Below, piece by piece: positions 6,197 through 16,000 of a stretch of 55,362 nucleotides of DNA. The notes beneath the pieces are model-generated. The model was not told where the DNA came from. It saw nothing but the letters and a program-made list of their open reading frames with translations, and made no database searches. Location of the stretch: assembly GCA_020536535.1 (NCBI GenBank), contig JAHLWZ010000896.1, forward strand, positions 1-55,362. The letters are read 5' to 3'. Positions within the stretch are counted from its first letter, which is position 1. The number at the start of each line of letters is the position of its first letter. The stretch is from Pelomyxa schiedti. Its lineage: Eukaryota > Protista > Evosea. The position numbers and the translations under genes were made by a program.

Positions 6197-9100
6197 CTAA
6201 GACTGAGACATTTTACATATCCACTCGAAGCCCTCGTAGAGACCGTCTCCTGTCAAGGCGCAAGAGCCCCGCATTTGATACGGGTGCCCAAGTTGGGTGA
6301 GCATTGGAACGGAAAAGTATGCTGCTACATTACTTGGGCTCATGCACCCTGGAAGGTCTTGTTTGTTGGCTGTTTTTTTTTTTTTGTTTGAGTAGTATAG
6401 CCAGATGAATGGATGGGACAAGAAGTACCATAGAAAAGAACAGGAAGACCAGCAAGTTCTGGAGACTGCATTATCTATGTAGGAATGAGTTGCGTGAATA
6501 GGGTTGGCGGAAACAACTGTGTGGAATTCTGTCCTTGCTTCCTCAAATCGCTCCAAGTCGGCGGAGTCCACCACAAATATTATCCCAACTGCACCTTGGT
6601 AGTCTGGGGAAATTAGATCATTTGCCTGTAAAAATTGGTGGCTGTACATAATTGCCAAAGGGGTCTGAATGAGAGGTCTGTGTATGGCATGAGTAAAGTT
6701 GTTCATCTGAACTCACTGCACATACAGCCACTGATATCCTGGTGTTATGATTAATGGGACTATCGCTCATGGAAAACCGGCACACCCAAACAACTAAATG
6801 AAAATTCTTGAATTCCACTGTTTCAACATCTGTTTTTCCGTCATGTGTATCAGAGGAAGCAAGAGCATACTGAACCCAATGGAAGGTATGGTTGAAACAA
6901 TTTCATTAATCTTAAGTCTGTAAAGCATTGTGGTTTTCCCTGAAAAGCGTCAAGGAAGACAATATAAAGTCATTACCTGCTGCATCCAAGCCAAGAACCA
7001 GAATACGACGCGGAGTAGCTGACTTGCTTAACCAACTGTACGTATAAGAAAAGACAGAAGACAGTAGGGAGCGGCGGGATTTAGATTGTCTAACTTCCGA
7101 GTGAACATAGGAAAAGTGTGCGGGTAATTACAGGTCATTCGTGACACAAATTGCACTTGAGGTTGTTCTTGAAGTTTCTTTGAAAAAAGCTGTTCTATAT
7201 ACCTTCTTCCAATTTCCACGAAACCTGCCAGTTAGGGGTTAGAGCGTCACTGGAAGAGGTGGTCAGACGTTGAGGAGTTGACCCCTGTGGTATCCATTAA
7301 AAAAGCAGTAGGTCTTGACCAGTGCCGAGATTCATATAAATTCTTCCAAAGGAGATTACTTGAAGCAAAATAGTTCATTGTGTGGCATGTACAACAAAGA
7401 TTGCATAGATTTTCAGCATCAAGTAGTGATAATACTTTTCTAGAAAAAGTTATTTTGGCATCAATGGGATTTTTAGTACATCAAAACATTTGGGTGTAGA
7501 GTTGTAAACAGTCCTGTGTTCTGGTTATGTTAGCTATTCTTTAGAGAGTACCTGCAGATGTTCCGGGCAAATTGGCTGAAGAGTGATACCGTATAACACA
7601 CAAACTCCCAGACGAACTGCAGGCAAGATTGGCAATTACTTCCTTCCCTTTAAGAGTGGCTATTTCTGTAGGTGTGGATCGATCGAGAGTATCGCCCAGA
7701 CCTGAGAACACTAATTTAGGATAGAGACCTGGTTTTTCATTCGAAGGGAGGCACCTAGTTGCCCATTGTCATTTGAGCCCCAACTGTAAACAGAGTTCGT
7801 TGTTGTGACAGCAAGGGAATGCGAAGAAGTACAACCCGCTGCTATTTGAGCAATACTGTCGATTGTCACAAGGGATGGAGTGTGGCGATTTTCATAGTCT
7901 CCAAGACCGAGCTGGCCTTTACTGTTTTCTCCAAATGAAAACAGCATTCCACGTTCATTTATTACAAGGGAGTGATTATTTCCACATGCAATTTGTCTGA
8001 CTACACTGCCATGAAAAAATGGAACGCTCTCGGGAGAAACCTTCTCTGAGCACTACATAGTCAGAGTTAGGTATAATTGTTGGGACGAAGCCAACATCAT
8101 ACATATTCTCCATTTCCTGTTCAAAGTTACTCGGAAAGAAACCGAGTGAGTTATATACCAAGTTGACCTTGCAGTCCACAGCCCCAAGAGAAAAGTACCC
8201 CCTCAGTAGAAACTGCCAGTGTGTGTTGATACCCGGCAGCCACTTTTTCAATCTTCATTTTGTCCTTGAAGCAACAGAGCCTAGGTACTTCCATGTATGG
8301 CCTGTATGCAGATTAACCAATTGGAAACAGCAGGTTCGATTCAGCTCTAAAGGTGGGAATTACACACTCTGGTGATGGCGAAGTCACCTCTCCAATGCCA
8401 CGCTGGCCATGAGTATTTTTCCCGAGGGAAAAAAGAGTGCCAGCCTCTTCAAGTTGAATCAATAAATGTTCGGCACCAGCAACAATAGCCCCGAAATCCG
8501 CAGGCCCTTTTATTCACTATCAGTCCCATCATGCTTTGTGAATAAAGAGACACACTCTTAATAAAAGATTTTGGCAGCCTGTTGCACCAGCTTGTATTGC
8601 TTGATTTGGAAGGTTCTTCCAAATCCCACACCCAAATGTGGTCATGAGTTCTAGATACTGCCCACACAGTACTTCTTCCACAAGCTAGGCTTTTGTTTCC
8701 CACCCACAATTGAGCAAGAAATCCAAACAATTTATAGTTGTACGGCACCTGTTGGCGCAGTAGGGCCCAAATGGCATTCTCTGGGGAACAGTGGATTCAC
8801 TCAGGCCCCAAACAAAAATTTCTCCACCAGCCAACACTGCAGCGTGCCTGGCGTAAAATTAAATACATAGCCACATAAAAATGGAAATGGTTTTGGTTGT
8901 GCCTTTGTCCGCAAGAAACATGGCTGATTCCACTCTCCCCGATTCCCGACAAGCACGGCACCAATTCCGGTCTCGTGATTGCTCCCGGAGTTGTTCTGTT
9001 CGGGGTAATTGGTCGTCCCCAGTAGTACACCTCAACCGACATCCTGAACCGTTCTGTGCACGTTTTGTTGCAAACATTGGAGGAATGGCTCTCACTCAAA

Positions 9101-11160: not shown

Positions 11161-11324
11161 ATATTTGTTTTCGTCTGCTGGTTTTTTTCACCCGGGAGGG
11201 CTTTTTCCAGCAGACAAAAACAATAACATAAAACAAACAACACATTTTCATATCTTTTCCTTTTTTTAAAAAAAAAACCAAAAAAAAAAGGTGGAAACTC
11301 ACTTCATTGTCATTCCTCAAAAGT

Positions 11325-12539
11325 TTAGGGGAACTTCTGGGCAACAAACCATTGCCTTGCTGCATTACCCACAGCCTTCTCAATTTGTGGGTTCCAGGTT
11401 AGGTTGCTGGCAGCCAATTCAGTTTTGCTCTCCTTTTGTGAATGGTTAGGCCTATGGGTGGCGTGGAAAGAATGAAACCTTCTTAACATCGTCAACCATC
11501 CATTTGAGGAATTTGCCTGGAAGTGAGAGTGAATGATAATGAAAGTTCATTTTCGTTCATACCTGTGGCACTCTTTGTTGGACCATCAGGACAAACAGTA
11601 CCAATGCCTTGCTGGCACCTTGCTTCAGTTACAAACATATGTGCGAATTCTTCAATTGATGCTGCAACATCAGGAGCAACCTGCGTTTATTGTTATTGTT
11701 GCATTATTGTTTCAAACAATGGTACCTGGGCAGGAGTATGTTTCTTTCCTTTTGGTTGTACCATCGCATGATGCTGCCCCTTTGTTTTGAAGGAAAAAGC
11801 ACCAAATTGCTCAACAGTGAAAACTTTCTGGCAAAAATCAAAATTTCATAAAGAAAAAAGAAGTCAACATCAGCATCCCAGAGGCTGACTGGATACCACA
11901 CAACTCCCTCACCAGTTCCACGAACCCCAAAGGTTGCAAACACCTGTTATGGTATTAGGTGGAAAAACAGAAAAAAGAAAAAGTTACCCAGGGATCTTCG
12001 TGGTCAATTGCTTCAACAAGCTGATTAATCTTTGGGGTTTGTTCCTCCATTTGGGCAGTATTCTTGAGGTCCATGGTAATGGATTCTCCACATTGCTCAC
12101 TGGTGTACCAAGGTAAAATGTGAATGTCAGTAGGGAGTGGTGGCAGAATGGCCGAGATCTGAGGGGGGTCTGTGACTAGAACATTTTTTCCTTCAAGATG
12201 GAGCTATGTGCAAAGTAAGCACATGCAAAAAAAAAGTTTGAAATAGGAACCTCAATTGAGAAAATTGCCCAGATTTTCTTTCCAATAGCAGAGACAGCTA
12301 CACCACTCTGAATTCCAGGACCACACCACTCACCAAACACTGTTATATTTTGTACCAGAGGGAATGCAGCTTTGACGGTACCAAGAGCTGCATTGAAGAA
12401 AGCACTCTTACTATGGAGTATAAACGACTAGAGTAAGAAGTAAAATTCAAGTACCTCAGAATAAAGCGGGCAAACCCAGCCATATCAGATGTCTCAGTCA
12501 GCACCCTTGTTCTTGATTGTGGTGCAATTCCCTCCTCTG

Positions 12540-12576
<37 letters not shown>

Positions 12577-12921
12577 AAGTAAGAACTTAGCTGAACTTGT
12601 TCTTTACACTTAATCACATCACGTATAAAAATTAAAATAATTTCATAAAAATAATTGAATAATAAATCAAACAACCGGAGACACACCGGAAACGTGTACG
12701 GCAGCGTTGGACCCGTGAAGTTTCACCTTTGGCCTGTACACCATCCTCGACAGGGCCGACGCGTCGGCGCCAGGCAATATCGCGACAGCTTCGGCGGCGG
12801 TCCTCTCGTTGGTCACTCGGGCTACGACGGGAGCTAGACCCGTGATCTCGGGCCAGTAAACGACGCCGCTGGCCGCGCTGCCGCTCTCCTCCGCGTTTAC
12901 TTCAACGTCCACTGCTGCCAT
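11325..12921 (-). CDS. ATP-dependent RNA ligase, Rnl2-superfamily (bacterial/phage Rnl-like); intron-containing
   Basis: The spliced product has all nucleotidyltransferase motifs in order: I YRPKVKLHGSNAAV (Lys codon 12721-12723), Ia QSRTRVLTETSDMAGFARF, III TVFGEWCGPGIQSGVAV, IIIa WAIFSI, IV FGVRGTGEGVVW, V FSFKTKGQHH. The C-terminal domain reads SIEEFAHMFVTEARCQQG...KFLKWMVDDVKKESKTELAASNLTW...AVGNAARQWF. Stop TAA at 11325. Confidence 0.85.
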
Positions 12922-13073
12922 GCCTATGCGTTGGATAGGGTTCAGTTGATTTTTTTTATTTCGTTACGAAAGATGTTTCGTGGAACGTTGTGAAAGTTCA
13001 GAACAAGTTGAACCATGCGGTGAGGGTGAGAAGTGAAAGGCGAAATCAAAGGGATACACAACAGGAACAGAAT

Positions 13074-16000
13074 TCAGCCCCACAACGGCCTGCGGAAGGA
13101 ATCGAGTTCCTCCTGTGCTTTGGTGTGGTTGGAATTGGCTGCTAGCCGGTAGAATGCCACCGCAGTCCGTATGTCTCGGCACAGGCCCCCATCCCCTCTG
13201 TGGTGCAGAACCCCCAGTGAGTACATTGAATTTGGACAGCCTCCATCCGCTGCTTGTTGCCAAAGAGACACCGCTTTCTTCATGTCCGGCTCAACACCTT
13301 CTCCATGTTCATAGTGCTCCCCGAGGCTGAACATCGCTCCAGTGCTGCCTGCATCAGCAGCCAATTGCAGGAACTTTAGAGCTTTGACCACATCAACAAC
13401 CCCACCGGTTCCTTCTTCATAGCACAAAGCCAGGTTAAACATGGCCGAGGCGTCGCCCTCCTCTGCACCTCGCTCATAATACATCATTGCGGTGCCAGTG
13501 TCCTCTGGAACGCCCTCGCCATTCTCGTAGCACACGCCGAGGTTGTTCATCGCCGCTGTGTTGCCGCCATTAGCAGCCCTCTGGTAAAGTGATACAGCCT
13601 TGATGCAGTCCTTTTCAATGCCTTCTCCGCTGTTGTAGCACACAGCGAGATTGTACATAGCATCAGCATCACCGGCTTCAGCGGCCCTCTGCCAAAGTGG
13701 GATGGCTTTTGAAGTATCTTGGATGAAACCACCTTCGCCGACATCAAAGAGAACTCCAAGCATGTGGGTTGCCTGTGGGTCACCGCAGTCGGATCCACGG
13801 CGGTACAATTCAGCCGCTTTATGTGCATCTCGTGTAAATTCACTGTTTTCATCGTAATAGTACATCCCAAGGTTGTACATAGCAGCGGAATCACCATCAC
13901 GCGCTGCACTCTCCAGCAGTGAAAGTGCTTTGCTTGCATTTTTATGCACGCCTCCACATCCGTGTGTAAAACATAGGCCCAGTATTGTCATGCACGCAGG
14001 CTTAAAACGGGGAGGTGGTTGTTGTGGAGCTGCTTGTTCGGTACTCATATTGTGACTCGTAATTACACAAGAAGCTCTGTTTACAAGGTAGGTTAGAAGC
14101 GCACTTCCACACTTCCTCAAACAGATTGTCATCCAGAGTGCCACAAAGAACATGCAGGTCCATGATTGAAAACTGTTGTTATTGCTGTTACTCACTTCCT
14201 CCAGTACTGACAGCCTCGTGACAATGATGTCTTCAGCGAGGTCTGTGGATGTGTCGGATCCACACCACCCACCCCTGACAATGTCCCTTTGATCCATGTC
14301 ATCAAGTAGATATTGGGTAGGAGAGTCGGCCATTGGTGTGTACTTCACAATTTGGATGTTAACCACCTTTGCTGCAATTGTGTAAAGAAGGTCATTCCAT
14401 TCTTCAAGGGTGCTCTCCGTCTTCTGCTTGTTTTTATCGTGGAAGGACAGAACACCTCTGCAAAACTTCCTCAAAAGTGAAAATCGAGGTGAGGTTGCCC
14501 GTGAAAAAGTAGGGTACAAGTCTGCCGGAATGTAATGCAAGGCAAACTGTTCGCGATTTTGTGTGACACAGGTAAGACCATAAAGGAACAGCAAACCAGG
14601 AAGGTATTCCTGCTTGTATTTGTCCACCTCTACACTTTAGTAAGGCTTAATAACGATATCACTGAAAAGATAATCACCATCACCACGGTGTTCCCAGTTG
14701 AAATGCAGAGTAGCCTGCAAGACAAGATCAATTGCGGAAGTGATGTTTCCCAGCTCCCACTGTAAAAGCGCTTTCATCATCATCGCGTTTCGGGGGTTCC
14801 ATCCATCTTTTAAGAACTTAGTGAAACATGTTGCGGGATTTGGAAGGGATGTTACATGAACAGGCGGAAATCTTATCGTTCCACATCTGTTCGTACCAGT
14901 TTGTGCTGCAAAATTCCATTAAAAGCTTCATGACAATGGATGGTGAGAATGGTTGCTGCTGTGACATAGTCTGCAGTTTTACTTGCAAAGGTTTTTGCTT
15001 GTGATTGTACTGGCTGGGGCAGATGTGTCTCATCCACAGTGCTAGAAGCAGCAACTCAGGAAGTGTACCTCCGTGTTGCCGGTCGATGGCTCTTAATAAC
15101 TCAACGGAAGTGATTTGGAGAGATGCCCTTCCTGTGAGAACTTCTGCTATTCCTTTTTTTTCGTCTTTCTCCAGTTGAACAGGCGTTATTATGGATGCAG
15201 AGTAGATGTAATGAAGGAGCAATAAAGCTGGTGCAAAGGAAGGTGTGATTTGAAGTGCCTCACGTACGGTGGACACGCACTCCACAGTTGAAATTCCGCT
15301 GTGAAGTTGGTGCATTGCCTTCATTGTCAGTGATCCTATTTGCATTTATGTATTGGAATGTGGATTTTCCTCTTCACCTGAATCCGTGGGCACCACAATG
15401 TGGGAGTAAAATGAAAGAAGTGTAGACGGATTAGGTGGTCCAAGGTGCTCTAAGATCCTGTACGCGCCCAGGAGTTGTATTCTCTTTGCAGGATCAAAAT
15501 GAAGTAATCCACAAATAAGGTTGCAGAACTCTGGTGGGCAATCTGCCGACTTCACAAGGAATGCTGATTCCTCCCTCTGGGTAAGTGGTATAAGTCCATC
15601 AGCGTCGTAAAAGATCTTTGGGTAGCCAGAGAGTGACTGCCTCCCACACATGGCAAGCTCTAACAGGAGACACCCAAGCCCAAAGGATGGTTGCTGATTG
15701 TTTTTTTGGGAGAAAGTTATGATGGATTCATTGAAGATTAAAAACCCACTGTTTCACAACTCGTGAGAAAGGGTTCTAGGTCTGAGGATTCGGCTTCTTG
15801 GAAGTGCTGAGAAATCTCGTTGAGAATGTCGGGAGCTATGTGCCGTTCATTTCCAGCACAGAACTGTGTGACTTCATTCCTCCTGAATAATTTTCTCTTA
15901 GTCGCACACCAAAGGTCCATCAGAATCAACTGTTCCTTGTTCTTTTGATTGCATCAGAAAAAAAGGGAAGGGGAATGTCAGATAGCGCACACGAGACACT

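Follow-up and report, generated by a model that had tools for sequence, protein, structure and literature searches.

Does the amoeba Pelomyxa schiedti carry, as a working gene of its own nucleus, an RNA ligase of the kind found in bacteria and phages, and if so, where did it come from and what might it seal? The question is raised by contig JAHLWZ010000896.1 (assembly GCA_020536535.1), of which we analysed a stretch of 55,362 nucleotides (nt), hereafter the window. A sequence-only reading had placed an intron-containing ligase gene at positions 11325-12921. These positions match the coding region exactly, which runs on the minus strand from the ATG at 12921 to a TAA stop at 11327-11325. We consider it very likely that the three parts of our answer hold together: P. 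schiedti has an active nuclear gene at this locus, the product is a stand-alone ligase of the Rnl2 type, and the gene was acquired long ago. The ligase is a further member of an already known type of enzyme, and the protein has already been deposited and named in GenBank.

Reading the minus strand between positions 11250 and 12960 gave nine coding exons, and not about seven as first counted, separated by eight introns. All eight introns have GT-AG borders. The first is the only long one (150 nt), and the remaining seven (41-47 nt) measure, in order, 44, 47, 44, 41, 45, 46 and 46 nt. The spliced product has 377 amino acids (aa) and is identical to the GenBank/NCBI protein "RNA ligase 2 [Pelomyxa schiedti]". 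We retrieved this protein by a profile search, in which the rows of the alignment were separate exons and phage proteins, and it then served as the query. Intron 1 has about 40 consecutive T on the coding strand (12541-12582), just ahead of the acceptor site.

Evidence of expression comes from Logan contig SRR23919876_25783 (1239 nt, run SRR23919876), which encodes the exact 377-aa product in one uninterrupted open reading frame (ORF). It aligns with the window from 12943 to 11241 in nine blocks, at 99-100% identity, with all eight introns absent, and the block ends coincide with the exon borders that we had read from the window. An intron-free copy of a gene with eight introns is most simply a spliced mRNA, which makes it very probable that the gene is transcribed and its introns removed. 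The transcribed region, as delimited by this single assembled contig, spans 11241..12943 on the minus strand and includes around 22 nt of 5' untranslated region (UTR), the coding region, and around 84 nt of 3' UTR.

The motifs of nucleotidyltransferases (I, Ia, III, IIIa, IV and V) and the helical C-terminal domain (C-domain) had been described as intact, and all of them were indeed present. They are distributed over the nine minus-strand exons as follows. Exon 1 (12687..12921; aa 1-78 plus 1 nt) encodes N-terminal helices with a conserved WPEI and motif I, K67-LHGSN (12723-12706), K67 being the motif I lysine. Exon 2 (12455..12536; aa 79-106) carries motif Ia, Q85-S-R87 (12519-12511). Both motif III (FGEWCGPGIQ, 12337-12308, with E133) and motif IIIa, around F156 (12274-12254), lie in exon 3 (12251..12410; aa 106-159). 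Exon 4 (11988..12203; aa 160-231) encodes a variable insert of the nucleotidyltransferase domain with a conserved DPW at its end. Motif IV, G-E243-G-V-V-W (11913-11896), is in exon 5 (11869..11943; aa 232-256), and motif V, F-K270-T-K272-G (11791-11777), is followed by the linker to the C-domain in exon 6 (11726..11827; aa 257-290). The C-domain is encoded by exon 7 (11563..11680; aa 291-330; first helices, with conserved R311 and Q314), exon 8 (11479..11516; aa 330-342; helix FLKWMVDDVKK), and exon 9 (11325..11432; aa 343-377 plus TAA; last helices, with E343, LTW and ARQWF). Residues R87, E133, E243, G244, K270 and K272 were invariant among the 118 family members, and K67, H69, G70 and N72 were conserved in at least 90% of them.

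The assignment to the Rnl2 superfamily, made earlier from these motifs, was supported by profile and fold comparisons. The protein matched the Pfam profile RNA_ligase (PF09414) over residues 66-253 with 34.5 bits (cut-off 27). The match to PHROG 548 "RNA ligase" (phrog_548; E 1e-38) was longer, covering residues 66-372 and profile positions 37-336 of 341, i.e., the C-terminal part was included. When the single protein was used as query, T4 Rnl2 was the only sequence match in the Protein Data Bank (PDB; E 1e-3), and the profile of the 118-sequence family matched residues 31-301 of T4 Rnl2 with an E of 1.4e-14. The AlphaFold2 model scored high (predicted local distance difference test 93.3, predicted template modelling score 0.89). 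Foldseek ranked full-length T4 Rnl2 first (E 1.3e-11), followed by the T4 Rnl2 nucleotidyltransferase domain, REL1, NgrRnl, and DNA ligases. The domain after motif V is all-helical and matches T4 Rnl2 residues 244-328. The architecture is Rnl2-like, with a nucleotidyltransferase domain followed by a helical Rnl2-type C-domain.

T4 Rnl2 (PDB 2HVQ, 2HVR, 1S68) shares this two-domain layout but shows only about 17% identity to the Pelomyxa protein in the structural alignment. Its motif I is at residue 35, whereas the longer N-terminal part of the Pelomyxa protein places it at residue 67. The insert between motifs IIIa and IV is also larger in the latter, which is encoded by a nuclear gene with introns. 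Judged by its sequence, the window ligase is a distinct sub-branch and not an orthologue of T4 Rnl2. Much closer are the tailed-phage and bacterial ligases of the phrog_548/PF09414 group, such as gp181 of Vibrio phage Cody and a tRNA_bind-ligase fusion of Stanieria cyanosphaera. They match the protein end to end with 38-46% identity and have the same motifs and C-domain, and sequence similarity assigns the window gene to this family. In contrast to the window gene, these genes are intron-free and prokaryotic or viral, and many of the bacterial members have an N-terminal tRNA-binding domain.

We considered other ligase families and rejected them. An Rnl5 identity (DraRnl/NgrRnl) does not agree with a motif I that lies at residue 67 and is preceded by a short helical stretch, nor with the presence of the C-domain: NgrRnl has the opposite layout, with an N-terminal signature domain and no C-domain. 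In the fold comparison NgrRnl aligned only across the nucleotidyltransferase domain and ranked under Rnl2 and REL1. The RNA_lig_T4_1 profile (PF09511) had no match on the protein at E up to 1, which excludes Rnl1 and Trl1. DNA ligases and mRNA capping enzymes were rejected too, as the protein does not show DNA_ligase_A_M or mRNA_cap_enzyme together with an OB-fold, and its best matches were to Rnl2-type ligases instead of these enzymes. REL1 of Trypanosoma brucei (PDB 1XDN), which acts inside the kinetoplastid mitochondrial editosome, has no sequence-level match to the protein and a different C-terminal part. Finally, the Rnl of the Pnkp1-Rnl-Hen1 system is also a stand-alone ATP-dependent ligase of the same superfamily, but this Rnl, the comparison that had been proposed, did not come up in our sequence and fold searches. 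We saw no Pnkp or Hen1 gene next to the window gene or next to the two bacterial relatives that we inspected, both of which are stand-alone chromosomal genes.

Pfam gave no match to single exons of the window gene, even at E 10, and the PDB matches of exons 3 and 1 alone were discarded as chance, those to thioredoxin-type proteins being caused by the WCGP string of exon 3. Exon 3 alone did match 194 phage records, of which all 15 listed are annotated as RNA ligase or RNA ligase 2, and 27 IMG/VR loci whose full-length ORFs (about 320-345 aa) pass the Pfam RNA_ligase profile. In linked tblastn searches, ligases of phages and bacteria, about 330 aa long, were colinear with all nine exons (E 1e-29 to 8e-37). 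Hence, the motif match is far beyond chance. A six-frame scan of the genome with PF09414 missed the window gene, whose domain is spread across six exons; for intron-rich genes, a blank six-frame scan does not show absence.

The closest relatives found by a word search were eukaryotic: proteins of Mastigella eilhardi (59% identity) and Physarum polycephalum (44%), both from EukProt, and four Physarum-like proteins on short Joint Genome Institute (JGI) contigs (42-47%). Bacterial and phage proteins came next, near 40%, the best bacterial match reaching about 46%. No named protein of Dictyostelium, Entamoeba or Acanthamoeba was among the top matches, which hints at, but does not prove, patchy retention among amoebae. 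An exhaustive HMMER search identified 2,708 cluster representatives at E up to 1e-3, with a handful of eukaryotic members against thousands of prokaryotic and viral ones. Many cyanobacterial relatives have an N-terminal tRNA_bind domain, which is absent from the window protein. One bacterial-type relative with tRNA_bind and ligase domains, from a European Nucleotide Archive contig (P0362, 794 aa), is split near the start of its ligase domain by an intein with a LAGLIDADG homing endonuclease.

Could the gene have arrived recently from a bacterial symbiont or a phage, or be a contaminant? Pelomyxa carries prokaryotic symbionts, according to a passage of PMC13198582 citing Treitli et al. 2023, and the family is overwhelmingly bacterial and phage. 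However, eight spliceosomal introns interrupt the gene and are gone from the transcript contig, it shares its 55-kb contig with other eukaryotic genes, it has orthologues in Mastigella (59%) and Physarum (44%), and the best bacterial match reaches no more than about 46% identity. The introns and the orthologues refute a recent arrival or contamination, to which we give practically no credence.

When T4 Rnl2 served as the outgroup of a tree, all seven amoebozoan rows came together in one group deep among the 118 other rows. In a set of 91 rows, every known or likely eukaryotic row except one (P0288) fell into a clade of 17 tips, together with three rows of unknown origin. The clade was supported by a Shimodaira-Hasegawa-like approximate likelihood ratio test (SH-aLRT) of 99 in a quick posterior mean site frequency (PMSF) tree, by 0.992 in FastTree, and by 99.1 (SH-aLRT) and 98 (ultrafast bootstrap) in IQ-TREE under LG+F+G4. 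In the last of these trees, the support was 99.7/100 for Pelomyxa with Mastigella and 93.5/97 for the group of stand-alone amoebozoan proteins. The sister of the clade is a group of 42 tips, and the few of these that carry names are bacterial (Cyanobacteria, Myxococcota, Acidobacteria). By these sequence comparisons the window ligase and its clade sit inside a family of bacteria and tailed phages, as would fit an old transfer with introns gained afterwards. This agrees with the suggested old, domesticated acquisition, but we saw no sign of a large virus as the donor. The labelled viral relatives are Uroviricota, and we reject an origin from a giant virus for want of any signal.

We place the gene in a branch confined to eukaryotes (Archamoebae, Myxogastria, and at least two others) of an otherwise bacterial and tailed-phage family. 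Most likely it was free of introns when it entered an ancestor of the amoebozoans or a still earlier eukaryote, and intron gain, duplication and new fusions would have followed; this direction of transfer is the one that we infer. The window gene and its paralogue in the same genome (described below) have none of their eight intron positions in common, as expected if an intron-free gene was acquired and received its introns later. The reverse history would be vertical descent from an ancient eukaryotic gene, lost in most lineages, with bacteria and phages having acquired theirs from eukaryotes. It would accommodate the several deep branches with different fusions in the eukaryotic clade, and the tree is in principle unrooted. 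Yet the eukaryotic rows lie deep inside bacterial and phage diversity once T4 Rnl2 is the outgroup, prokaryotic and viral representatives outnumber the eukaryotic ones by thousands to a handful, and the two paralogues do not share a single intron position. We hold such a descent to be improbable.

Several observations weigh against an old acquisition of an expressed, Rnl2-type gene by a eukaryote. The evidence of expression is one assembled Logan contig. For five of the 17 members of the clade, the only record is a short contig of unknown origin. The family tree has no established root, and a transfer from eukaryotes to bacteria and phages, or ancient vertical descent with many losses, would also be compatible with the tree. 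The NCBIfam equivalog profile of Rnl2 (TIGR02307) scored only 17.3 bits on the protein, far under its cut-off of 197, and the substrate preference may therefore differ from that of T4 Rnl2. Lastly, our literature search found no biochemical study of this sub-branch, despite its thousands of bacterial and phage members.

With these points in mind, what might the enzyme do? We propose an ATP-dependent polynucleotide ligase of the Rnl2 type, encoded as a stand-alone protein. By homology, K67 would react with ATP to give ligase-AMP, the AMP would be passed onto a 5'-phosphate end, and a 3'-OH RNA end would attack it to form the phosphodiester. The substrate would most probably be a nick in duplex RNA or in an RNA:DNA hybrid. 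We infer this activity, the substrate and the cellular role discussed below from the comparative analysis.

The genome encodes many other RNA ligases. We found a multi-exon gene for RtcB (contig C222) and two to three Rnl1-type loci (PF09511), two of them clear (contigs C953 and C796), all separate from the window locus. Loci matching PF09414 number at least seven: the window gene, its paralogue, and at least five others (contigs C918, C1037, C1180, C451 and C213), among which the one on C451 has REL/T4-Rnl2-like motifs. This set is unusually large and as rich as that reported for Naegleria gruberi, likewise a free-living protist with many phage- or bacterial-type RNA ligases, i.e., NgrRnl of the Rnl5 family and five predicted Rnl2-family ligases (PMC4408790). 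Rnl2 is also listed among the gene transfers into anaerobic ciliates (PMC13198582). An Rnl2-type ligase is thus less unusual in a eukaryote than the sequence-only reading had assumed. Concerning possible partners, no PNK3P-type gene is on the window contig, as had been noted, and the three PNK3P loci of the genome are on other contigs. Regarding Hen1, searches with Hen1_L, and also with PNKP_ligase and tRNA_lig_CPD, gave no match, with their controls silent too.

Since RtcB is present along with many further ligase loci, the window ligase is one of many and unlikely to be an essential tRNA-splicing ligase, a role that had been suggested for it. We regard it instead as a probable accessory enzyme of RNA or nick repair. 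It might still act on tRNAs, by repairing those cut by ribotoxins or by helping to join the ends of permuted tRNA precursors, and the N-terminal tRNA_bind domain of many bacterial relatives points that way. This domain is missing from the window protein, however, and the genome has RtcB, the usual eukaryotic tRNA ligase. Furthermore, the ends left by the splicing endonuclease (2',3'-cyclic phosphate and 5'-OH) need healing before Rnl2-type joining, and Rnl2 enzymes prefer duplex nicks over loops. A ligase directed to tRNAs therefore seems quite unlikely.

The relatives with additional domains broaden the range of possible functions. The closest paralogue in the genome (P0301; 1,025 aa, GenBank KAH3762714.1) is a second protein named "RNA ligase 2 [Pelomyxa schiedti]", encoded on the minus strand of contig C438 at about 25.9-27.7 kb (about 380-1990 of the extracted locus, L008). 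It combines the ligase with BRCT, WGR, PARP regulatory and PARP catalytic domains, and the final helix of the ligase shares an exon with the beginning of BRCT. It retains ligase motif I, and the H-Y-E catalytic residues of PARP are present by our reading of the aligned PARP part. A protein of another eukaryote (P0349; 988 aa, one ORF) has the same layout and 38% identity to the paralogue; its gene is on a 6.8-kb contig beside a RabGAP/EF-hand gene. We found no description of a ligase-BRCT-WGR-PARP fusion in the literature, and the Pelomyxa paralogue is more novel than the window gene itself. A third architecture, a ligase with an N-terminal DENR_N zinc-knuckle module (P0253/P0194), was found on a JGI metagenome contig of 590 kb (7237-8994 of locus L049). 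The DNA of this source has 54% guanine plus cytosine; the gene has three introns and lies beside genes for a bromodomain protein, a mitochondrial-type RNA polymerase and VPS13; introns and neighbours identify the source as another eukaryote. The DENR_N module hints at a connection with the ribosome or tRNA.

These fusions suggest functions that pull in two directions, tRNA_bind and DENR_N towards tRNA and translation, and BRCT-WGR-PARP towards the repair of strand breaks. BRCT-WGR-PARP modules resemble proteins that sense breaks in DNA strands, and their fusion to the same type of ligase in P0301 and P0349 raises the question of whether the window enzyme serves mainly in DNA-damage repair, sealing nicks with a 3' ribonucleotide or a 5'-phosphate next to DNA, instead of repairing cellular RNA. 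In vitro, the 5'-PO4 strand used by Rnl2 and Rnl5 enzymes can be DNA (PMC4408790), which would agree with such a role. On the other hand, the window protein has no BRCT, WGR or PARP part, and the fusions of its bacterial sister groups to a tRNA-binding domain and of one eukaryotic relative to DENR_N both point to RNA or translation. We view a main role in DNA repair as somewhat unlikely, though less so than one in tRNA repair. A broader proposal, which we offer tentatively and which may well prove wrong, is that Rnl2-type ligases of phage origin underwent a radiation specific to eukaryotes, each being rewired by fusion, with the window gene as the member that stands alone, and that together they would form an undescribed nick-repair toolkit. 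If so, this toolkit would connect the joining of breaks that have RNA ends with ADP-ribosylation signalling and with the translation apparatus.

Among the papers searched, the ciliate study was the only one to mention both the species and RNA ligase, and the P. schiedti genome paper does not discuss the window ligase. Eukaryotes are known to have kept only a short list of RNA ligases of phage or bacterial type, and the gene is a well-documented addition to it, supported by its introns, a spliced transcript and orthologues in two classes of amoebozoans. The amoebal, tRNA_bind-fused and PARP-fused members would lend themselves, as a set of three, to finding out what ligases of this kind repair. 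With no obvious link to the ligase, the neighbouring gene on the minus strand (13074-14627) is a long ORF that, read by eye, is rich in SEL1-like repeats (AAMYNLG, CYENGEG).
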